NCBI RefSeq assembly: GCF_000143415.4
Contig: NW_003314273.1
Span: forward strand, 1,518,052-1,582,051
Source of the DNA: Selaginella moellendorffii
Taxonomy: Eukaryota; Plantae; Lycopodiophyta
Reading direction: 5' to 3'
DNA length: 64,000 nt
Shown here: in pieces, positions 39,601-55,403 of the stretch
Position numbering within the stretch: the first letter of the stretch is position 1
How the letters are laid out: the number at the start of each line of letters is the position of its first letter
Notes under the pieces: generated by a model
Seen by the model: the letters and a program-made list of their open reading frames with translations, nothing else
Told to the model about the DNA's origin: nothing
Databases searched by the model: none
Program-made: the position numbers and the translations under genes

Positions 39601-42038
39601 TACATAAAATTCATTTATCCAATCCAAAATGCTCAAAACTTTCACCACTTCTAATTGTGTCTAAGAAATATAGCAATTTACAAGTTTGTGTAAATTATGA
39701 AAAGCTAAATGATGCAACAAAAAAAGATATGTTTTCTATTCCTTTCATAAATGAAATTCTGGATTTAGTAGTAGATCATGAAATGTATTCATTTTTTTAA
39801 TAGATTTTTGGGTTATATCCAATTCAAAGTAGCACTTGAAAATCAACACAAAACAACTTTTATAAGCCCATGAAGAATTTATGTCTATTGCAAAATACCT
39901 TTTGGTTTATGTAATGATCTTTTTATATTTCAAAGAGTTATTGTAAACACTTTTAAAGAATATTTCATTGATTTTATAAGAGTTTTCATAGATGATTTTA
40001 GTGTCTTCAACTCCAAAAAGGAACATTTAATATGCTTGCAAAAATATTTCCAAAAATATAGAGAATATAGCATTTCTTTTAATCTAGAGAAATGTAATTT
40101 TTTTGTAAATTCAAGCACACTTTTAGGTCATATTATATGCAAAAAAACATCCTTGTAAACAAAGATAAAATTCAAAAGATTGAGACAATGTTTTTACCAC
40201 ACAATTTAAAAAGTCTCTGTTTCTTTCTAAGTAAAGTTCGCTACCATAGGCAATTTATGAAAGCTTATATAAAGATTGTTAAGCCACTTACTGATCTTTT
40301 AAAAAAAAATACTCCATTTATATGGAATTTGTTTTGTTAAAAAGCAGTTTTAAGGCTTAAATAATGCATCAAAAAGACACTTATACTTATTAAGCCCAAA
40401 TGAACAAAAGAGTTTCACCTATAAGTGGATATTTTTGATATTGCTATAGATACAATATTGTTCCAGACACAAAGTGATTAAAAGGATCATGCTATCTACT
40501 ATGCTAGTAGACGTTTAAATCCTATTGAACATAATTACATAATGACTGAAAAAGAAGCCTTAAACATAATTTAAGCTTTACAAAAATGTAGACATTATCT
40601 TTTGGCAATAAAAGTAATTGTCTTTGTTGACTATAAGGCTCTTTTATAAGCCATATATATCTACTCGACTAACTAAATGATTTTTACTACTACAAAAATA
40701 TAACCTTAAAATAGTATAAAGATTTGAAAAATTCCATAAACAGGCCGATTGCCTAATCCGCATCACTACAAGAGAGTCACCTAATACTAAGGTAGAAAAA
40801 CTCCTATTTGTTCATTATTTGTAATTTTTATGCCTACCACTTGGTTAAAAGATATACAAATCTATTTTTGTATAGGCACTGTTCCACCCCATTATAACTC
40901 GCCAAAGAAAAAGAAATCATTTGTCTTGTAGACACAACTTTGCTCTGTCGTGGGGGAGCACTTATATAAATTAGGCATCGATAGAACACTAAGAAGATGT
41001 GTTAATAGGCAAGAAGAAAAAAATAAAATTCTAAAGGAAGCTCACTTATCCCCATTATAAAATCACAGTTAAAAAAGTCTTACAAGCAACGCTATGGTGG
41101 CCTATGCTTTGAAAAGATATAGCAATTTTATGTAAAAATTGTAATATTTACTAAAGGCATAAACTACCACCTAAAACAAAATCCATGAATGAAATCCTAA
41201 CTATTCATATGAAGCATTTCATAAATGGGGATTGGATTTTATGGGTCTTATGGTGACAAGAAGTAAGAGGAACAAATACATTTTAGTCGCCACTAATTAT
41301 GTGACTAAATGGGTAGAAGCTATACCTATAAAATAAACCTCAACCACTAACATTGCCAAATTCCTTTATGAAAACATCATTGTAAGATTTAGTTTGCATA
41401 AGGAGATCGTCACAGATAGAGACACCCATTTCATCAATGAAATAATAGAAATTCTTGTACAAAAATTCATTCTTAATCACAAAAAGTTTATGCCATATTA
41501 CCCACAAGGGAATAGTCAGGCTGAATCAACTAGCAAAGTGCTTAAAAACATCTTGAAAAAGATTGTAAAGGACAATTAAAAAGACTTTGATAAGGAAATC
41601 CTAGATGCTTTATGGGTTTATAGGACTACGTATAAAGTATTCATATGCATGACACCATCTCGTCTTACTTATGGCCAGGAAACTTTAATGCTTATGGAAT
41701 TTATAATTCCCTCTTTGCATATTGCAATTAAAAATGGCTTAGATGAAAAAGAAGCTCTTAAGTAAAAACTTGCCAAAATAGAAAACTTAAACAAGCTTAA
41801 GCTTAGAGCAATCTAGACCCTACACACAATTCAAAAAGCCAAAAATGCTAAACATGATAGACAATTGAAAATCATTTATAAGTTTAAGCCAAGAGATAAA
41901 ATCCTTTGGTATCAAAGCAAAATAGATATTCTTATAAACAAATTCAAGAGAAAATGAAATGCTCTCTAATTATTTTGTTTAAAATATTAACTCTAGGAAT
42001 GGATGAAGTGCATAACTTAAACGGGGATGATACTACAA
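36700..42038 (+). mobile_element. Heavily decayed, AT-rich Ty3/Gypsy element D (gag, RT, RH, IN remnants), related to element B; resumes at 54432
   Basis: WCTKCKNEGH knuckle near 38561; YKDIFAW...KGIPPE; FIDDFS; integrase WGLDF and YPQGNSQAE motifs. The left boundary is approximate. Confidence 0.8.
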
Positions 42039-42062
42039 AAGCTCTATTTCGTTAAAGTGGGA
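42039..42062 (+). repeat. Left terminal inverted repeat
   Basis: Exact reverse complement of 54408-54431. Confidence 0.95.
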
Positions 42063-43667
42063 TTTATTCAGTAAAATGGGACTAGGTACAAATTTTCAAG
42101 TATTTGAAAATGACGTGAAATTATATGTTTTTTGTCCAGGGGCTAGACATATCTGGGGCATGGTGACTAGCGCGGTGACTTTATGTCCAGACTGTGTCCA
42201 TCTGGTTGTATAATAAATCTCATTGTCAAGGTGAACAAGCCGAATCTGAAGCTAAAGAAGAGCGATGGCATGCGCGCACACACTATTTGTTTGTTCATTG
42301 AGCGTGTGGTGAGCTTTCCAAGATGAACGTCATTCCTATTAGCCAGACATATAACTTAATGGTGAGAACATTTAGATATTATTCAATGTTATCTTTTTCT
42401 AACGAATCTAATTGTGAAGGTGTAGCAAGAGGCATTGCTAGTCTGGAGAAGTCATTTAACTCATTTGACCCTTAGTGTATTTTCATGAAACTAAATAACA
42501 TTCATATTATTAAGGAATTTCTCTAGTACCTTTTTTTTACGACATAGAGGCTTGCATTTCTTTCAAAGGTGATTTAGTAAAAGGCCTGAGGGCACATGCC
42601 ATTCTATTTCTCAGACCGGTATTAAGATATACTAGTGCAAAGGGAAAAAGGTATTTGGTGATCAAGTAAATGGCATGAGGGCACACGCCATTATAAGCCT
42701 AAGCGCTAGTGGACACCTCCTTTTTGGTACTCTCAGTGGTACTATCATCCTTCTCCGGGTCAGTTGTTTTGCTTTGGATTGTTGTCTCTGATGTTACTGG
42801 GGCGTTCTCGATAGTTGTTAATGTTGCCGTTTGTTCAGAAAAATGATCACCTGGAGTATAGTACGGGGAGTTTGGAAGACTTATATATTCTACATCTTCA
42901 CCTATCTCCTTCTTCGTCTCCTTTTCTGCCTCACTTACAGATTTTGTGCTTGCCATGAGAACACTCTTCACCCTAAAATATGGAGTTCGTTGTGTTATAA
43001 AAGGAAACCAACACACACACTGCAAGGGAATGATGGTACATAAAGCACGTAAGCCCACAATATGGGTTTATGTGCCATTAATATGGGCCACATGCCATAT
43101 TATTAGATTTATGCACGTGTGATTGGTAAATGCATATGTCACATCATCTTTGTTTTACCTCACACACTATATCAGGCCTAATGAACCATATCACATGTGC
43201 GCACATGCTATATATATGGAGAAGTATTATGCAAGGATAGAAATTCAATGCATGATTGTGGAGAGCAATGGCATGAAGCCACATGCTAAATAACATTTTA
43301 GAGAAAGAATTAAAATAAAAACATGCAAACAGTACTAAGTGGACCAAGACTTAGAAGTGCACAATTGAATGAGGTATTTCTAATAAATACTTCACTCACC
43401 TCATATAGGAATGGCTACCACTCTCAAATGGCGTATCACCTCATGCCATCACCTCGCAATTTGTTATAACAATCCGATGAATTCATATTCGGCTTGTTCA
43501 CCTTGAACTTTAAGTAAGATTTGCTAGAACAACTAAGAATTTATACTTGTTATTTGTATCATCTCACCTAGGAATGGCGTAAGGCCACATGCCATCACGC
43601 CTCCTCTGATTTAGATTCGGATTGTTCACCTTGAAATAAAATACATTAGAAACTTAATAAAGGAATA

Positions 43668-46493
43668 TTAATGAATCTCACTTTGAACCCGGGTTATGAA
43701 TGCTCTTGCTGCATCTCTTGCATGGTCTGGCAAGGTGATGGTGGCACTCTGCTTCCGCATCCAACCATGCACAACATTATCCACCGATATGCTCATGCTG
43801 GGATCCCTTGGATTCAACACCCATCTCTTTTCTAGGCAATCCTTCGTATATTCGGAACTTGGCTTGAACCACTCCACAGTTACATTGAAGGAGTTAGTTT
43901 CCGCGTCCTCCTCTGCATCAGTGATGCAGCGCCCCACCTATATCATTTGTTTTTTATTACTGGGTCTGACAAGCACGACCATTCCTTTGCAGACCTGTAC
44001 TGGATTGAATGCTGAATCCGGCTTCTTGTTCCTCGGCCCACAATAGTGATCCTCAACATCGTTATCTGTCACTGCATTTCCAGAGGACATTGTTCCGCTA
44101 CTATCTGGTGCTCTGGGTTCTGGCCAAAAGGACTCTTCCAATTCTTCATATACAACCGGCCCATTTTGGATAGCAGATATAATCTTCTCCCAGTATTCGA
44201 GCAAAGGCTTGCACCTCTGAAAATAGGATTCTCCACCAAACACCAACCCCCTCTTCCAGAAGGCAATATGCTGTCTAATCCCGGCCACTATACTTTCCTG
44301 GTCTTTGAGTCCATCCGGGTGCATCGGCTGTGGGGAACCCTGAGGAATCATAGGTTCCCCAGTTATGGGATCTCTCTTGAAGAGTTCAATGCCGTCCACT
44401 GGCAGCCACACTGTGTCCCATTCTCTCATCTTGTACCTCATCACTGGAGCACCGTCACACATGCTGAAATGAAACTGAAGAGGCTTGGAGTGGCCAATCA
44501 GCGTTTCGAATCCGTCCCTGATGTAGCCTCTTACAAACCCCTTAAAGTTTGGAACCTCTGTAAGAAGTGCAGCTTCAACAGTGCCTTTGATGCAATTTTG
44601 GAATTCATCGTAGAGTTGTGGGAGGGTGAGGACATTGGATCACCGGAGGGACTCTGCCAGGTGACTGAACATGGCATCGACGTCTTCATGAGTGTGCCCA
44701 ACCATGAGAAAGCCAAGTGTAACCGTTTCAAATATGCCTTTGGCAACAAGCATCGCCAAGTACGCGAAGACGTACATGTTTTTGTTCTCACTGCCAGCAT
44801 TGTCTGTTTGGAGCAGAAGATGGGGTGGAAGGCCACATCGGCCGCAAGAACTTCCTTGAGATTCTGCTTCGTTTGGATGAGGCTGTGCATTCACCGGGCG
44901 ACCACCCTCGTCGGAATGGTATGAGGCCTCACGTGATAACCCTACAATCTGACGGCCAACATATTCACTGGGATGGCATGGGGCCCCACGCGATACTGCA
45001 AGCCTTTGCTCCTCCTCCAGCTGAACCCTGTATGGGGTTCGATCGACAAGGGCCTTATGCAAGGGTTCGCCGTTTAGCTCAGTCTGCGCACTTTGTAGAG
45101 ACCTTAAGTGTTTTGCTAGGGACGCAATCATCATGTTTGCACCCCCGCCACCCCATAGAGGTACAAAGAAGTTCCCATAGTTCTGGGCACCATGCCCATG
45201 AGCGATTATGCCAAACAGAGACACAGGCAGCTGCATGGATGAAGAGATTGCCTTGGGGGCAGGATTGAGTCGAGGTAAGCACGTCTTTTTCTGGTCCATT
45301 TTGTCGTGGATGATGCAGAGGTAAGAGTCAGGTCTCTCCATGGAGAGAATCCTGTTATGATAATATGCAGTCCTGCAACTTCTCTGCTCGATGTTGTGGT
45401 CGAGCCGCCTTCTAACCAACGTCTCTCGCTCTTGAGCGCTGCAAGAATTCTTCGACAAAGCCATTTTGATAGCAGTGCACTCGTCACACTTTGAAAAGCT
45501 GGAGTACTTTCCTATACTCACATCCCTGAACCTGTTGCTCCACAATCTACTAAATCTAGATTGGCTCAGCTTCCTGTAGCCATTACTCTGGAGTTCCCGA
45601 TTCACATCTTCCAATATGGCCCCCTTGGTATACATGGAAGGGAGAACTTGTTGGGTGTCTCGTGTTCCATCTTCCAAGAGGCGGGTTTTATGTGGTTGCT
45701 GCTCGCTACATGTCTCGATAAACCTCTTGAAGATTGCCTCTCTATATACAACATGACCCCTGGTTTTGTGCGTACCGTCGTTCCCATGGACTGCCTGTTG
45801 AACCCTTTGTTCCTCGAACTCAGTTTTGATTCTGTAGAATGTGGTTCGAGGGACTCCATAAATGATTCTCCATGCCTTCATGCAGACCAAACCCCTCTGG
45901 AAGACCATGCCCCCCACCTGATGTTCTGAAGCATCAACAGATGACCGTAATGCCTTATACATAAAATTGCGAGCTGCCATCCAGGACAATATCTTGTATC
46001 TTGCTCTCTCCTCTTCAATAGCATCCCAATCAGCATGCTGACAACACCTCCTCTTGCAACAAGCAACTGTCGAGACCATTCGAACCTCCATCGCCATTTT
46101 CTGCCTTTTCGGTTCGTTGCTCAGATCCTTTTGGCTGCGCTTTAGGAAGGTGTACTTTCTTTTCCCATGAAGAGATGTTCTGTCATCAGTTGTAGTGGTG
46201 TTTGATTGTGAATCCTTCACATTCTCAAACACTAAGTGCCTCAATTTCCACCGCACAATGCTTCCAATAATCAGACTATTTTCTTCTGTGTCAACAACCT
46301 CTAAAATCGCAACTCCAATATCATCCCAGCCCAATTCTTGATTAACAACCACATCTCTTGGATCGACAACTGTGGCTAAGCCCTCAGCTACCACCTCCCC
46401 CTCGGGGTTGTTTAGAAACACCTTCGCCTGAATCCATGTAGCACGGTTCTTAAGATCCACGGAGGGAACATGCATCGCACTTGCGGAGGCCAT
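43668..46493 (-). pseudogene. DDD-type transposase (~941 aa, Sola1-like motifs) with two in-frame stops
   Basis: ORFs 44640-46493, 43938-44462 and 43668-43937 are in one frame, separated only by TGA (44640-42) and TAG (43938-40). Motifs: FSKCDEC, IIHDKMDQKK, LQTDNAGSENKN, FLMVGHTHEDVDAMFS. A splice acceptor (TTTCAG) lies just before the ATG. Confidence 0.85.
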
Positions 46494-48398
46494 TCTGAAA
46501 GTGCAGAAAAGAAGTTAAGACCATACAAAAAATGATTGGAGAATGGCCTAAATCATAACATACCAAACAACCTCAATAGCATGAGGCCACATGCCATTAT
46601 TCAAACATGCTATTGACACCCATGTGAAATTTCGCATTCACAAAATTGGCATGAGGCCTCATGCCATCTTGATAAACACATAGCTACAAGTAGGTAAAGA
46701 AACTATTGGCAATATGCTAGTGATGAACTTGCAAGCCCCAAGATGGCATGAGCCCTCATACCATTAGTGGTACCGTAGCGCCACTCGCACCACCGCAACT
46801 GCTCGTAGCACCGCTCGCACAAACTGCCACTCGCATAAACTGTCGCTCGCAATGGCCCTCGCAATGCCGCAATCGCTCGTAGACGCATAAACCACAGCCC
46901 ACAACGCCGCTTACACAAGCAGCGCTCACTGCGCTCAGCGGAACCAAGAACACGGCGCACAAAAATGATAGACCTAGGAATGAGTTCGAGAATTCAAAAA
47001 TAACACACGCTTGAACGTCACATCAAATCCTCTGACAAACCAGATCTTATGATTCCTCTGACAAATTTCAAACTGAGTAGCGTCTAGACTTTGCTGTCGG
47101 AGGTTGAACTTTGTCACATCATGTCCTTGCCTCGATCCAGCTGTGCCATGTCAGTGATTCGAACTTTGCCATGCCATGTCAGCGATCCGCGCCAAGATTA
47201 TTCGCCGTGTAAAGGAATAATTATGCTGTGTGTGTACGTCCATTTATGGCAATATAAGGCCACACGCCATTTAAAGAATAATGCTAGTCGAACATTTTTT
47301 GGTGCATTTTTGGGTTTAAAATTGCATGAGCCCACACGCTATAAAGTTTACCTATACCAAAAATAGAAACAGCTTTATTTACTTGGGAATTTAAGTGGTT
47401 GAGGCATTTTTAAACTTACAAACACATGCCCTACTTACATTCCTTTGGTTGCTTAAAATTCAAAAATATTATAAACCTTTCTTTTTACATTTTGAATGTT
47501 TTCAATTATGGTTTTTGATTTTCGCAGGACCAGCCTAGTAACACGCCATTCAAGGAATAATGCCACAGGACGCCTGGATTTTTGGGTTTAAAATGTTTAG
47601 GGTTTTTTGGGTTTTTTCAAAATATTTTGGGTCCAACGTTTTTTGGGTTTCTTTGGTTCAAAATTGCATGAGCCCACACGCTATAATATTGATTTGAGAG
47701 AAAAATAGAAACAGATAGAATTTCTTTATTTAGCTGAACATCTGCCATTTTTGGAAATACAAGATGCTTTGGAATATCCAATCATGCATGGTATAAATAT
47801 AGTGAGGGTATTAAATGATATCCCAATCATGATCTTTCTTTTGGATTTCGCGTGCATGCAGTCCGAGGAATGATGACATTGCGGATTTCTTTTGGATTTT
47901 GCGTGCTTGCATGCGCGCGGCAATCCAGAAATTAATGGTGGCGCCCAAGTCTGAGGAATGATGACGTGGCGGGATTACCAACCGTTGTGACATTTCGCGC
48001 GTGTGAGGTTAGGTTTTGCATTTTGCTTCATACTCGCGCTCGCGCTCGCATCACACTCGCGCTCCCGCTCGCATCGCGCTCCCACTCGCGATCACACTCA
48101 CTTCTCTACAGGTTTCTCGTGTGCATCGGCGTCCACTCGCGCTTGCATCACACTCGCGCTCGCATCGCGCTCGTGTGCATCGGCGTCCACTTCAAGACAC
48201 ACCCAGTTTGTAACTTCGCCGCCAACTCCGCCGCCCACTCCGCCACCCACACGCAGCCCACTTGGCGTCCCGGGAGATTTCAGCACCACTCTCCAACTGT
48301 AAGTGGCAGAGTAGCCTTGCTGCTACGATCTGCTGCACATACAGTGCACATTCACCAGCGAGTCTGGCCTCGATTGTCACGCCTCCATTCGGCTTCAA
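46494..48398. promoter_or_regulatory. Putative bidirectional promoter/5' UTR region of the transposon, with two CpG-dense blocks
   Basis: Lies between the two divergent start codons; CTCGCG/CTCGCA-rich blocks at ~46775-46960 and ~47995-48270 flank an AT-rich core with duplicated segments. Confidence 0.55.
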
Positions 48399-51300
48399 AT
48401 GGTAAGTCTTTTAGGCCAAGTAGAAAATGGCATGAGGCCACATGCCATTCAGTAGCAACATTGGCATGCACTGATTGGGCTCTCGAGTGCAGTCCGGTTA
48501 CAGATGGCGTGTAGCCTCACGCCATCTTAGGATGCAGCCTCAAGACATCTGATGCAGTGGTGAATGGCGTGTGGCCTCACGTTATTTCCAGCTGCTAGTT
48601 TTTCATCTGTCAGCTCTAATTGTTGTGCATTTCTGAACAGGCGAGGAATTGCGTTCTTCTTCCAGCCACTGTCAATGTGGATGCAGAGAAGGGGGAGGAG
48701 CTCACCAGTTGGACTTTCGGGATGGAAGGCGAGGATCTGATGTTGTGCAACACAGATGGTGGGAGAAAAGAATGCATGGGGATCCTCATCCAAGTGACAG
48801 ACACTCCATGCAGTTCCATGCAAGAATATGGACTGGCACTTGTGGTAAAGACAGCGTCCGCCTTCAAGATCCACCTTGCACATCCTAGTGGCTTCCCGGA
48901 GGGGGGCAGCGGCTATGAGGAATTCCTAGAGGGAGCTAGGGAGAGGTTGTCCAGGAGGCCCACAATTTCAAAGACGCTGCGGGTCTATGAAGATCACATG
49001 GAATCCACGGACCTCACCTACGGCGATGTTCAAAAACTATATTCCAACATTGAGCCGTTGAGAGTGCCTCCAGTTCGCGAAGCGAAGGGGAAGGGGGTCG
49101 ATCTGGAAACTACCCCGAAGCAGAAAAGGGTGGTCAAGCTCAAGCCGACGTCCGACTCTGCTGCTCCAAAAAAGAAGCTACTCGGTGATGCCATTGCCTC
49201 AGGTTCGAACACTACACCCACCAAAAAGAAGAGCCGCAAAGAGCAGAAAGAGCAAGAAGAGGCAGCAAAAATCGTCGCAGATAATAGTACTTGTTACTAT
49301 TCCAACAAAGTATATACAATTGACGTGAGCCGTATCGACATCCAAAGCAAATACAACCACAGGCTAGTATCTGATGAGTGGGTGGAGAAACTGAAGCAGA
49401 AGATGCTGGCAAGTCCAGTAACACCCGACATCGCAGACGTGATCCCCTACTACCGAACAATGAAGGGCGAGACGAGGTTTCCAGACTTGATCAATAGGAA
49501 GGTGTTGGACGATCAGAACATCCGGTTCTATGCCGTCTCCGGGCAGCATTCTAGCTTGGCGATGCAACAGATAGTTGTGGATATTATGGTGGGCGAGGAG
49601 GTGAAGAAAGTCTTCAAGACAAGAGTTGTCCGCCTGATAAAAGGCAACTCGCCCCTCCAATCTATCATATACATCTCCCACGCGCAGAATGTCAAGCAAG
49701 AAACGTGCTACAAATCGGGTCTGCACGAGACATTGGCACGAACACGGAAGCTCTAGGTTCAACTGAAGAAGCCACAAAAACCAGGACAAGGACGTGCACT
49801 AGCAACTAGCGCCTGGCAGGTAAGCCTCGTTGCATGTGGCATAGCATGTGGCCTCACGCCATTTCCATTGCAGGAATTCTCGAGTCTTCTCTCGAAAACA
49901 CTGGGGGTCAATGACACACTCAGCATCCATAACATTCTACTCGCGACAAAAGTTGTTTTTGACAAATGGGTAGATGTGCTGAGGAGGTACCATGACGGGG
50001 AGTTGCTAAACTCAATGGGTGTGGAGGACGGCCGGAAGCCCAATGATTTGAAGCTCAATGCTTTGTGTTTCTCACGGTCTCTAAGCGACGACGACCTTCT
50101 GACAGTGGCTAATGCTCTTCTACGTGGTGAGGTAGTCTTCAACAAGACCAAAATGACTCCCGGCCATATTGTGACATACGAGGACTTGTGCACGACTCTG
50201 AGAGCTCGTGCGCTATTGAAGGATTGGATCTTCGAGCAAGTGGCCGTGGAGAGGGTGAGCATCGACACCACGCAAGAGATGATGGAAGAGCTGGAGTTGT
50301 CAAATGAAGACATCGACGAGTACGTGAAGGGGGCCCCCAAGTTCATTAATCTGCTGCGGGATGCCACGAAAAGTAAAGCTGAGAAGTTGGATCAGTATCC
50401 AAATTTCATTAAGAGGGATGTCGACCGCCGGCTTCAGAAACAGCTCGACCCCGCAGCAGAGGCCTATCGAGAACCTTACCGGGTATACGTGAATTCGGAT
50501 GAGGATCATAGGTGGAGGAGCATCGTTTCCCGCGGAGATGAGCAGGTCAAGAACATCTTTTGTGTGATGGACTTCACAAACGAGGAGATCACTCATGCAG
50601 ACGAAGTCAGCTCCATCATTGACTTAATGGTGGGACTTGCGGAGGTGGAATCTTCAGTCCACTATATGATCTACGACTCCGAATCCTATCACAAGTTCTG
50701 GAAGGCCTTGAACGAGGTGAAGGCTCGGTTAAAAGGCAAGGAGATGCGGGAGATCCATGGGATAATGGCTAAGAAGAAGATACCGACGAATGTCCACATC
50801 TTCACACTCGCCCTTGTTATTGGTCCTGCAGCAGAGTGGGACTGGAGTGACTTCCCAGCTTCGTTCAACAAGGCCGATCGAATTGATCTGAGGGAGGTCA
50901 ATTTACCTGTGCCTGAGGAACTGAAGACGGCTATGGAGCTTTCGAATCCAAAGAAAGCTCCAGGTGCAGCATGGGAAATGCTCAGCTGGGTCTTCAACGC
51001 AATAGCGAGTGACTCCAAGGGCAAATGCGTTGTCGAGTACAACTGCGGCGGACTATTCTTTCGAGCCGCACTACTCAAGGGTGTCCCGTGTGTTGCGGTG
51101 ACAAACTCCATTGAAGAGGTGACTTCAATGGAGCATATAATTATAGTTGCCAAAGAAAAACAGTATCTTCTCTGCGAACCTGGTGAGTACGCACTTTAAG
51201 TTTAAATGTTATCTCACAAGCTCTGTATGCAGGAGCATGGCCACCCCCAGATGCTGAAACGGCGTTAACAGCTACTGATGTTAGGCCGAGCTCACAACCT

Positions 51301-53989
51301 GCAATAGGTAAGGTCACGTGAGGCCTCACGCCATTTTGATTATAGATCGTTGTGAATATTCAGACACGAGGACTGAAAAGCACACTGGTGGCACGTCGAA
51401 GAAGGACAAACAGACAAGCAATAGGAAAAAAGGAGGTACAAATTATATTTGCAATGGCGTGTGGTCTCATGCCATTCCTTGCAGGAGACACTTCTTCAAA
51501 GGCAAAACAGGCAAGCACCAGCCAAGCTCAAACTGACAGTGGTCATAAAAAGCGAAAGCACGTTGGACAGTCGTCGGGATCAGAGGCGTTTGATTCGAAA
51601 AGGAAGAAGGGCAACGAAAAGATGATAGGTAATGCCTCGCGGTTATGGCGTGTGTGCTCATGCCATTCATTGCAGATCAAGGGCTGAGTGAAAGGAGCCA
51701 GTCACCACCTCCTGACTCAGATTCCTATGGCAGACTCCCCTTCCCCAATCTCAATGGAGAGGTACAATGGATGAGGGATGCTTTTCAAGTCAGGGCCACG
51801 TTTTTCTCATCTCGTCGTCTTCGAAGGGTGCAAGAACGTGCAGAAACCATGTTAAGACAGTCGGGTGAGGATACGGTCCTAGGTCAAGCACTAAAACAGG
51901 CTATGGATGTCTTGTATTTTGAGATGGAGACTCGGCCAGATGATTTTCCCAAGATGGTCCTGGAAGAACAAGCCATCCAGCCTGAGCAGCCTATGGAAGA
52001 AATACAGGAGGGGGATGAGGAGCCAGAGAAAGATAATGAGTAGGAAGAGCAGAAGGACGAAGAGGAGGACAAAGAAGAGGAGGACGAAGAAGAGGACGAA
52101 GAGGACTTGGATGGTCCTCACAATGGTGACGATCACAATAACGACGACGACGATGATGACGACGATGGCCAGCCTGAGGTGGCCAAAGAGCAGCGGAGGA
52201 AGGTCATACAAGACAAACCATCAGGTAAATAATAGTACATCCATTCCTAACCTTTTACCATTTCTAACATTGTCCATGTAGGTCGCAGAGCAAATGGTAA
52301 GTAGAGATTATTCAGTTGAATTAAGATACAAACTCTAGCCTTTAGTGTCGAGGAAGGATAGTGCCAAGCAAGGGTCGAAACGTATGTCCAATCTTTCAGA
52401 ATCAGCAGTGCGCCCAAGTGATATCGGTCCTAGTTCCTCAATAGCAGTTGATGGTAAATACAGTATAGTCGATTCAATGTGCTAATGAGTTTGTTTTTAA
52501 TAGCCAGTAGGGAGGATACCATCTCAATCGAAGGGAGATATTTGGACATGCATATGGATCCGCCAGTGGACTCTACTTGCCTGCAAGAGTCATCAGAGCT
52601 GGTGGAGGTTACTATCCATATCAACGCCAAGCAAGCTGACCACGCTCCACTTGATGCTGCCCATACCACTGACTCAATCTTGTCCACGTATCCAACTGAC
52701 GGTGACCAGGCGCCATTGGACCCGCATGAGGCCGCCCCAGCCGCCGAGCCGGTCGTATCCTCATTTCCAACGTGTGCCCAATCGTTTGACTACGCGCCGT
52801 TGGAACCTCCCTACACCGCCCCTGCTGCCTGTTCGGTCATGTCCACTTTGCCAACGGAGGCACCAACTGAAATGGCGTGTGATCACACGCCATCGGAACC
52901 ACCCCATGCCACTGTTGAGCCAGTTGTACCAGAGTCTACAGCTGAAATGGCATGTGCCCACACGCCATCGGATGCGATTGACCCCACATTGTAGAGGAGA
53001 GTATTTCCGCCCTTCACGTTTCCTCGACCAAAACCCTCTCAACGACCATCGGGAGCACCATTCGCTAATATTGTAGATGGTAAAATTGACTTGTACTATT
53101 TTTTATGCTGACGCATTTCATTTCAGAGTCACGGCGAAGGTACTATATCGTTTTTGATCTGAACGGTGTCCTTTTCTCCCATGAGCGTGGCTCGTCCTCG
53201 AATGTCACTGCACCCTCCAAAGCCTGCGGTCGCAAGTTGGTCAAAAGAGACAGATTCACATTAATCACACGGGAGAAACTGCGGGATCTAATAATGACCA
53301 TGCGACACTTAAAACAGAGGGCCGGGTTCAATTTGCAATTGGGAGTTTGGACATCCATGATGCGCCACAATGCATTAACGTTGCTACAGATGATGCACGA
53401 TCAGACGCGAGTAATATTACCATTTGACTTTCTCCTAACGCAGGAGGATTGCTTGACTATGGTCCATGTGAGGGGTAGCAAGCCCATCTTCGTCAAGCCA
53501 GAGGCTGTAGTGATGAACCGGATTGTTAGGTCAAGTGAAATCCTCATCATCGATGACTCGTCGATTAAAACTGCAGCGAACACGCACACATATGCAGTGC
53601 ACCCCATCTCTTGCAGTATGGAAACTAGGGAGAAGAAACCGTATGTTCTGGGGGACCTTGCAAAACGGCTTGGAGCGATGGTGATAGAGAACTGGCCAGT
53701 CCAGGAGGTGGCTGCAGAAATCAACCAAATGGCAGATGGAACGGTATATCAGAAGCCATTTGATCGGACAGACACCAGTCATCATTTATGGCATGTATAT
53801 TGTCTAGCCAAGCACTATCCGCATCTCCATAATCTACTCAACTGAATGGGTTCTTCGACCACTGAACATGAGCGTGGACGTATTAGAGAAGAGATGGCAT
53901 TACTATTGGGTTTAAATCCTGATAGTGTGGAGAGTGATGAAATTCCAAGATTATTGTATAGGCGTTGGAGGCAAAAAATAACAGTCTGA
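48399..53989 (+). pseudogene. 11-exon transposon cargo gene (~1600 aa): ParB/Srx-like domain, degenerate amino-MTase-like fold, basic/acidic low-complexity linker, FCP1/NIF-type HAD phosphatase
   Basis: Exons 48399-401, 48641-49819, 49874-51182, 51233-307, 51364-435, 51485-628, 51676-52224, 52282-296, 52346-453, 52504-53079, 53127-53845 (probably to 53989). All introns are GT-AG and the frame is kept. Stops at 49754, 52041, 52992, 53843. Motifs: FYAVSGQHSSLA; VVEYNCGG...AALLKG; IVFDLNGVL, GVWTS, IIDDS. Confidence 0.75.
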
Positions 53990-54407
53990 GATGGCATGTA
54001 TTTATTTAAAAATGTAACTTATTATGGCATGGGGTTCCATGCCATTGTATTAATATTAAAAGACAATTCTTTGAGAGGATTTGCATTATACTAGAAGTGT
54101 TACAGCATGTTATTGGAAGTCTATGAAGTTGTTTTATTAATAAGGGGAAAGTAAAGATTGAATGGGGATTTGGGCTCCACCTAGACTCGGAACAACTGAG
54201 CCAATATTAAAAGGATGGAAAGAAATTGGACGACGATGACAAGGAGAAGAGAGAGGTGAAGCAGTGGCAGAGGGAGGAGAAGTGATTGAGTAGACATTTC
54301 CTTGTTTAAAATAAAATGGCATGTGCCTCAATGCAGTTGAATTTTGTTATATTTATATACTATATAAAGGTTTGGAAACCTTATTTTACAAGTGGGATAA
54401 TGACAAT

Positions 54408-54431
54408 TCCCACTTTAACGAAATAGAGCTT
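54408..54431 (-). repeat. Right terminal inverted repeat
   Basis: TCCCACTTTAACGAAATAGAGCTT. Confidence 0.95.
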
Positions 54432-55403
54432 ACAATAGTAAATTTAAATTGTTTAAGAAAGTACCATGAAGATATAAGCATAAATATTTTTTATATCTTA
54501 GGGTGCAAAAATATGGATAATCTCATAAATAAAGCCCTCGCAAGGATTTATCGTTAAAGAGGGCCTTTTATTTTCCAGCAAAACACCAAAAGATTGGGTG
54601 TAGTTTTATTAGACACAAAACTAGCAAAGAGCCTTTATCTAGAGGGGCCTACTATGGAAGTTCCTATGGAGAGGGGGCTTGCTTGTGAATTGGATCCCGA
54701 AGGTTTGCCTAGATGTGTCACCTAGAACCATTCATCTAGTGGTGTCCACATCCATTCTCGAGTACCTACATTCTCTTGCTTCCATAAGAAATGCCAGATC
54801 TGTGCTTCTTTCTTAGCTTTTTCTGGACTATTTTGCCCTCCTCTCTTTTCCAGTTGTAGAACATGGGCTGCTGTTGTAGTAATCATTCTGGTCCACACCC
54901 GTGACACCACCATCTTCGATCCTTCATGTTTGTAGCGCATGTGGTTTTGACCCTTTATCCTATGGTGATTTACCATAGGATAACACCACGAAGCGGAACC
55001 TAAACCCTCTTTGTGCCACGTGACAGATGCCACGTGTCACATGCCACGTGTCCATAGGAACCCAAGGTTTAGGGCCTTGGGCCACTGAACGAAGGAACAG
55101 TGCCAAACTCCCAAGCGTGAAGCCAAAGAGTGGTGGAACTGAACCACGGAGCAACTCCTGAGCATATAGCCCAAGGAGCGAAGGAACAAGAGCCTGGAGC
55201 GACTTGGAACAGTCCTGGAGCAACTAGCATCCCAATGCCAGGACCAACACACAAAATGGAGCCAAACGGAGTCTGGCGCTATTTCAGCATATCGGTGGCC
55301 TAACGCGAGGATATGGGTACTCCACAAGCTAGCATGGTGTGGAACTTGGGCTTAGACCCAAGCCGGACGCATAACAAGGACAAGCACGCAAGCGGGAGCT
55401 AGA

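Follow-up and report, generated by a model that had tools for sequence, protein, structure and literature searches.

A divergent, probably ParB/sulfiredoxin-like domain in the accessory protein of a multi-copy, Sola-like transposon of Selaginella moellendorffii

The closest described counterparts of the gene considered here are accessory genes of large eukaryotic transposons. In Ectocarpus, the 21.5-kb transposon Sola1-1_Ec32 carries, opposite its transposase, an accessory gene that combines a ParB-like domain with a DNA methyltransferase; similar proteins of green and red algal transposons are cited in the same survey, together with the idea that a protein of the Sola1-1_Ec32 type acts on its own transposon (PMC12477816). 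A red-algal (Bostrychia) Plavaka (EnSpm-type) transposon encodes PAG3, in which a ParB-like N-terminus is joined to a 2-oxoglutarate (2OG) oxygenase, beside tandem inverted-repeat arrays (bioRxiv 10.1101/2025.02.11.637652). In fungi, DUF3723 (PF12520) is a conserved auxiliary gene of the Starship giant transposons and is of unknown function (PMC9156397). Here, we are discussing a 12.4-kb element of Selaginella moellendorffii, bounded by terminal inverted repeats (TIRs), and its long plus-strand accessory gene, whose product contains a conserved domain with a probable, very distant relationship to the ParB/sulfiredoxin (Srx) superfamily. The element occupies positions 42039-54431 of the window, i.e., the whole stretch of 64,000 nucleotides that was analysed (contig NW_003314273.1, positions 1,518,052 to 1,582,051), and all coordinates given below refer to this window.

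Accessory proteins with a ParB-like domain have already been described for giant algal transposons, and the element adds a diverged new member to this group. Likened to Sola1-1_Ec32 by description only, it is likewise a TIR element, Sola-like and of more than 10 kb; opposite the transposase lies a long, multi-domain gene whose product has a ParB-like domain close to its N-terminus and, downstream, a region whose protein-language-model neighbours in the Atlas are all N6_N4 methylases (0.85). In contrast to Sola1-1_Ec32, it measures 12.4 kb instead of 21.5 kb, bears dispersed palindromes, several of them in putative mini-introns, and has a NIF/FCP1-like region downstream; furthermore, its putative methyltransferase part is undetectable by hidden Markov models (HMMs), a DFTN motif in place of DPPY being recognised by eye, and the motif of its ParB-like domain is devoid of Arg. 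With PAG3, it shares the combination of a ParB-type domain in a giant-transposon accessory protein and inverted-repeat sites in the same element. The two differ in transposon superfamily and partner enzyme, and also in the arrangement of the sites, which are single palindromes across the whole element here and tandem arrays in the case of PAG3.

The peptide YTIDVSRIDIQSKYNHRLVSDEWVEKLKQKMLASP...RFYAVSGQHSSLAMQQI...RVVRLI, which a preliminary description of the window had singled out as ParB/Srx-like, corresponds to residues 221-378 of a stop-free frame of 378 codons at 48620-49753 on the plus strand (open reading frame 1, ORF1), that is, to its C-terminal 158 residues (49280-49753), and its singling out was justified, with relatives and invariant residues now at hand. 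This part of the accessory protein is organised as follows:

48641..49099, plus strand: N-terminal conserved region of the accessory protein, common to the relative P0001 (pairwise alignment).
49100..49279, plus strand: Lys-rich low-complexity linker (translation).
49280..49753, plus strand: predicted ParB/Srx-like (DGQHR-type) domain (homologues, invariant positions, hhalign to DUF6551/DndB, Atlas neighbours).
49361..49363, plus strand: invariant Arg (R28 of the domain), aligned with the Arg of the "QR" pair in DGQHR-type domains.
49538..49552, plus strand: SGQHS motif, counterpart of DGQHR, GERR, and GCHR, with Ser replacing the final Arg.

Among 1.84 billion representatives, searched exhaustively with phmmer, two relatives turned up (P0001, E=1.6e-4; P0002, E=3.3e-4), and a subsequent profile search yielded two more, P0003 and P0004 (E about 1e-31); a word-based homology search was dominated by the Lys-rich linker and missed P0002. 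All four are encoded on short, intron-bearing and eukaryote-like Logan contigs originating from other, unrelated sequencing projects. In the resulting five-sequence alignment, 16 positions are invariant (Y7, V16, R28, D53, P56, F83, G88, Q89, H90, A94, R115, R118, P125, S133, N137, and S146), and the motif reads [SD]GQH[ST] in all five members, with Asp kept in P0001 alone and Arg in none. The peptide is judged to be more than a chance reading because relatives with a shared motif and invariant positions were found; the domain is coding and conserved within a family, and this is supported directly by the alignment. The region upstream of the Lys-rich linker (48641-49099), which has no Pfam match, resembles residues 40-140 of P0001, with the pattern CMG[IV]xIxV.... 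The exon of the accessory gene probably starts at a splice acceptor ending at 48640, and the linker itself may be similar to a nuclear localisation signal.

DGQHR domains adopt the ParB/Srx fold and are recognised by a QR / DGQHR / FxxxN signature (PMC4619093). On the strength of profile blocks, faint library matches and Atlas neighbours, we regard it as probable that the Selaginella domain is a very divergent member of the ParB/Srx superfamily from the DGQHR branch, to which DUF6551, DndB, and GmrS/DUF262 belong. The superfamily reading of the preliminary description thereby holds in its general part, but the nearest branch is DGQHR and not that of the partition protein ParB. For comparison, DGQHR-bearing bacterial genes were collected by a pattern scan and assigned by Pfam to DndB and, in one instance, to DUF6551; the DUF6551 set was further filled with 11 phage proteins, many of them annotated as ParB-like. 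A profile of this set matches the solved structures of a sulfiredoxin (6ky4, E=0.007) and of Noc (7nfu, E=0.0074), and DUF6551 is, therefore, placed in the ParB/Srx superfamily. In hhalign, the five-sequence family aligns with the 12 DUF6551 proteins with a score of 36 (P=1.2e-4), with the N-terminal part of DUF6551 at P=1.8e-5 (probability 78%), and with the N-termini of DndB at P=2.5e-5 (probability 75%), and none of 300 column shuffles approached the hhalign score. The merged alignment consists of two blocks, set apart by 24 inserted residues that follow helix 1 and precede the GQH strand. When the GQH block was deleted on both sides, the upstream strand-Arg-helix block still aligned with DUF6551 (score 18.6, P=0.004, 0/150 shuffles), its I-x-V-x-x-I ... 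R-x-l-n-x-e-h-V pattern being in register with the first strand, the QR pair, and helix 1 of that family.

Independently of the pattern-selected families, faint matches were obtained in three different libraries, all of which fall in one clan. P0004 matches DndB in Pfam at E=0.025 through a 96-residue segment (31-126, profile positions 36-127) that spans the Arg through the GQH helix, P0001 matches DUF6551 at E=0.11, and one family member matches a ParB-like PHROG at E=0.17. The best Pfam scores are below threshold, with 14.1 bits for P0004 and DndB (cut-off 29.1) and 12.4 bits for P0001 and DUF6551 (cut-off 26.8), and the window protein itself has no Pfam match to either family. In the Atlas, the clusters nearest to the window domain and to residues 268-440 of P0001 (0.95-0.97; 179-198 shared features) are eukaryotic hypothetical proteins and DUF3723, with ParB_N and DUF6551 clusters at lower ranks; in predicted structure, the nearest matches resemble ParB_N proteins with template-modelling (TM) scores of 0.45-0.65. 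An alignment of ParB_N built from plasmid and phage loci contained too few and too similar sequences to be used.

Several results weigh against a ParB/Srx assignment. Searches of Pfam, NCBIfam, PHROGs, PADLOC, and the PDB sequences with the domain and its four relatives gave nothing above threshold, and PDB sequence searches with the domain profile and, by phmmer, with the downstream reading frame ORF2 yielded noise only. AlphaFold2 models from the shallow three- and five-sequence alignments reached a predicted local distance difference test (pLDDT) of 49.1 and 50.8; Foldseek found no meaningful PDB match for either of these low-confidence models, which are too poor to serve as a test of the fold and do not amount to a refutation, and for the second one, a wide VIA-align search and an Atlas shape search returned noise. 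The hhalign P-values are optimistic, given that the comparison families were reached through the DGQHR pattern. A control in which only a 16-column block, RFYAVSGQHSSLAMQQ, was kept and the rest was shuffled scored 37.4 +/- 2.0 against DUF6551, compared with the observed 35.9, and 31.1 +/- 1.9 against DndB, compared with 40.0, i.e., most of the score was reproduced; since the motif-kept shuffles reproduce the DUF6551 score, the full hhalign P-values are not taken at face value. Furthermore, the block preceding the motif is weak against DndB (P=0.085, 4/150 shuffles), and behind the motif nothing aligns with either DUF6551 or DndB. The phosphate-binding G-x-x-R motif is absent, Ser or Thr following the invariant G88-Q89-H90 in all five members, and the methyltransferase link to the published algal class has an Atlas score of 0.85 behind it.

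These results would also suit an unrelated or novel fold, in which the ParB/Srx likeness is a short convergent or chance motif made of a hydrophobic strand, G-Q-H, and a helix: the hhalign score stems almost wholly from the motif block, no database model is significant, the unconfident structure models match nothing, and the defining Arg is missing. We consider this somewhat unlikely, since a second, collinear block, on which the choice of the target families did not depend, aligns as well, the faint matches of three unbiased libraries converge on a single clan, ParB_N and DUF6551 are among the Atlas neighbours, and ParB-like accessory genes have been described from algal elements of the same transposon superfamily (PMC12477816). 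The order of secondary structure elements in both AlphaFold2 models is compatible with the succession strand, Arg loop, helix, strand, strand-GQH, and helix. In favour of a ParB/Srx membership, we infer the fold from these combined indications.

ParB, sulfiredoxin, and GmrS contact the phosphates of the nucleotide through their G-x-x-R motif (for the DGQHR/DGQQR branch, see PMC4619093). The preliminary description had pointed to an altered box in the Selaginella protein, and this observation extends to the entire family; because none of the five members has the Arg that ends the motif, canonical handling of nucleoside triphosphates is unlikely, and a loss of NTPase activity may be assumed. The GQH site itself is evidently constrained. 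Arg-less variants occur in bona fide DUF6551 members, as evident from three phage proteins (NGQHT twice and DGQMT once). The Arg that follows the first strand (box I or QR pair) is present as R28, invariant in all five members and preceded by His, Cys, or Tyr. An SxxxN arrangement (S133 and N137) is invariant, too, and might by eye be a counterpart of FxxxN, although neither hhalign nor MAFFT aligns it.

Among the prokaryotic families, DUF6551 (PF20188), a phage and bacterial "ParB-like nuclease domain", gives the best profile-profile match, the aligned parts being strand 1, the QR-pair Arg, and the strand-DGQH-helix unit; the Selaginella domain differs from it in the 24-residue insertion, the unaligned part behind the motif, and its eukaryotic, intron-bearing context. 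DndB (PF14072, TIGR03187) and GmrS share the QR Arg and the G-Q-H core with it, and the spacing from QR to GQH is similar to that of DndB. In contrast to DndB, Asp of the motif is replaced by Ser in four of the five members and Arg by Ser or Thr in all five, and there is no phosphorothioation or restriction context. In the phage loci L129, L135, and L137 (from a mycobacteriophage, a Staphylococcus phage, and a Dulem virus), a gene annotated as ParB-like or as helix-turn-helix (HTH) DNA-binding directly precedes the DUF6551 gene, and in loci L127, L128, L134, and L136, an integrase or immunity-repressor gene lies near it; these neighbourhoods suggest a two-gene ParB-type module. Separately, a metagenome-assembled genome of Thermoanaerobaculia (L078:1226-6723) encodes three tandem DGQHR-motif paralogues of 641, 626, and 612 amino acids, two of which are recognised by Pfam as DndB-like and one only weakly.

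According to its structure, the 12.4-kb element is a TIR-bounded cut-and-paste transposon. Its ends can be read directly: the TIR arms are 27 nucleotides long and 96% complementary, a 4-bp target-site duplication (TSD), ACAA, is seen in the flanks, and contigs of another sequencing run part from the window sequence directly after 54431. The element would be Sola-like, a label that rests on the length of the TSD. The accessory gene and the transposase-like ORF are located on opposite strands. The main features are:

42039..42065: left TIR, with the TSD ACAA at 42035-42038.
44640..46493, minus strand: transposase-like gene (DUF7869), main exon (Pfam PF25273, E=9e-30).
42265..54337: array of a 22-bp palindrome, ATGGCRTGnGGCCnCAYGCCAT, about 25 copies, confined to the element.
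54405..54431: right TIR, with ACAA again at 54432-54435.

Judged from the depth across sequencing runs, the element is highly repeated in the genome, and the region of the accessory gene is likewise multi-copy. A comparable gene is known from published Sola1 elements of algae; the label "cargo", which the preliminary description had given to the gene, is, hence, a misnomer, because the element family carries it as an accessory gene. In one sequencing run (X1), a single contig fuses element sequence with TTTAGGG-type telomere-like repeats (joint 48774/48861). This junction fits the plant-type telomere motif and possibly derives from an element copy near a chromosome end.

Elsewhere in the window, three degenerate matches with three mismatches each are the only occurrences of the palindrome, and in the short homologue contigs L001-L003, nothing above the level of shuffles was found. 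At least four short putative introns of about 49-57 nucleotides each hold one palindrome close to the 3' splice site; their positions are:

49820-49873.
51308 to 51345 or 51363.
51436-51484.
About 51629-51685.

Protein-binding sites, RNA hairpins, and small inserted units that created introns are candidate natures of these palindromes. An abundant, element-confined palindrome next to a domain with a ParB-type reading invites comparison with parS, and for red-algal PAG3, the same idea has been raised (bioRxiv 10.1101/2025.02.11.637652): the protein would be a functional, canonical ParB that is loaded as a clamp, in dependence on cytidine triphosphate (CTP), at the 22-bp sites and spreads over the element. 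For the Selaginella protein, this is very unlikely, however. Its counterpart of GERRxRA is SGQHS (SGQHSSLA), without either Arg, its nearest branch is DGQHR instead of ParB_N, and the characteristics of a partition ParB are missing, with no match to ParB_N, HTH_ParB, or KorB at E<=10 in ORF1 or ORF2; moreover, the element shows no ParA partner, and the present copy is truncated.

That truncation became evident when this region was compared with contigs from four sequencing runs of this organism. The relevant features are:

49754..49756, plus strand: in-frame TAG, a nonsense mutation private to this copy; nearly all other copies compared read TGG.
49757..49819, plus strand: remainder of the exon in the same frame, 21 codons up to a GT donor at 49820.
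49820..49873, plus strand: frame-preserving putative GT..AG intron of 54 nucleotides, holding a 22-bp palindrome at 49841-49862.
49874..51182, plus strand: next exon (ORF2), 436 codons.

At position 49755, three runs show G instead of A throughout their depth, and in the fourth, G makes up about 99%; the homologous residue of both P0001 and P0004 is Trp. Because the TAG stands at a conserved Trp codon that is TGG in nearly all other copies, this copy is interpreted as truncated, i.e., as an inactive pseudogene. At the other positions where it departs from the majority, this copy mostly has A for G or T for C, a pattern that probably reflects the deamination signature of a decaying, methylated repeat copy. 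A single RNA-labelled contig enters the putative intron at 49820-49873 unspliced. In the RNA-labelled run, contigs span 49569-49844 and 51604-51789, with the putative introns retained.

Downstream of the ParB-like domain, there are two further candidate modules, both of which look degenerate in this copy. All ten top-ranking named neighbours of ORF2 in the Atlas are N6_N4_Mtase, at a score of 0.85 only. Pfam (sub-pieces included), phmmer against the PDB, and tblastn against phages revealed no methyltransferase similarity of ORF2, and no counterpart of ORF2 was detected in the short homologue contigs L001-L003. By eye, ORF2 displays the motif order of a beta-class amino-methyltransferase, with DFTN in place of DPPY and NCGG in place of FxGxG; the degenerate motif IV (DFTN; 50540-50575) is followed by a motif I-like stretch, VVEYNCGGLFFRAALLKG...VAVTN (51025-51125). 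As a lead, the C-terminal half of ORF2 may, thus, be a degenerate beta-class amino-methyltransferase-like module. The second module is the following:

53090..53842, plus strand: FCP1/NIF-type phosphatase-like region (Pfam NIF, E=8e-5, 22.8 bits versus a cut-off of 21.8).

In translation, it reads DLNGV at the catalytic DxDxT of the family and may be inactive, at least in this copy; it would belong to the same transcript as the ParB-like gene.

According to the preliminary description, ParB-like domains are mainly prokaryotic or viral, and a horizontal origin was considered. A corresponding explanation is that a cargo gene was recently captured by horizontal transfer from a bacterium, a phage, or a giant virus; ParB/Srx domains of the DGQHR type, like fusions of ParB with a methyltransferase, typically occur in phages and mobile elements of prokaryotes, and the Atlas neighbours of ORF2 are phage methylases. 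No relatives were found, however, in 185,579 prokaryotic (GTDB) genomes, IMG/VR, and JGI metagenomes by pattern scan and tblastn, and tblastn against phages and plasmids gave chance matches only, and the only relatives found reside on intron-bearing, eukaryote-like contigs. Furthermore, the gene has predicted spliceosomal introns, is multi-copy in the genome, and belongs to a class that is present in brown, red, and green algal transposons (PMC12477816). A recent capture is, thus, highly improbable and the suspected horizontal origin does not stand as a recent event, nor does the generalisation behind it hold in this setting; any prokaryotic origin would be ancient at best.

The explanation we favour, with some reservation, is that the domain is a DNA- or nucleotide-handling part of the large accessory protein of a Sola-like TIR transposon. 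It would have kept the first strand, a box I-like Arg, the Pro of the second β-strand, and the G-Q-H core of its superfamily and would have lost the final Arg of the motif. The accessory protein would act on the DNA of its own element, and we infer a possible link to the palindromes, which it may recognise or bridge, at about 25 dispersed 22-bp sites, via some other part of the protein; the ParB-like module might then function in dimerisation or as an altered-nucleotide switch, and not as a canonical CTPase clamp or a nuclease.

A wider scheme includes DUF3723, which is the named family nearest to both the window protein and P0001 by language-model features (0.95-0.96; 179-198 shared) and, likewise, an accessory gene of large eukaryotic transposons. 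In contrast, Starships are moved by a tyrosine recombinase and not by a DDE-type transposase, and the PF12520 (DUF3723) HMM matches none of the five family members at E<=10. ParB_N proteins are among the structural neighbours of the DUF3723 model. In this scheme, which is speculative and which we hold to be unlikely, the accessory protein and the approximately 25 palindromes would form a self-recognition system that bridges element DNA and aids transposition or shields the element from silencing, and the same ancient module would recur in DUF3723 of Starships and in uncharacterised animal and fungal proteins.

Up to now, the literature has only touched on ParB-type accessory proteins of giant eukaryotic transposons, in brown, red, and green algae, and no functional study of any of them exists. 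The Selaginella element adds to them a multi-copy family from a genome whose telomere repeats are of the plant type (TTTAGGG), and since the domain has diverged beyond every standard domain library, similar genes have probably been overlooked in plant annotations. With a defined 22-bp palindrome in about 25 copies, the element offers a compact system for the question of whether such proteins recognise their own element. The link to DUF3723, if confirmed, would give the first functional hypothesis for a conserved Starship gene, and if the wider scheme is true, ParB-type DNA handling would recur as an accessory function among the large DNA transposons of eukaryotes.

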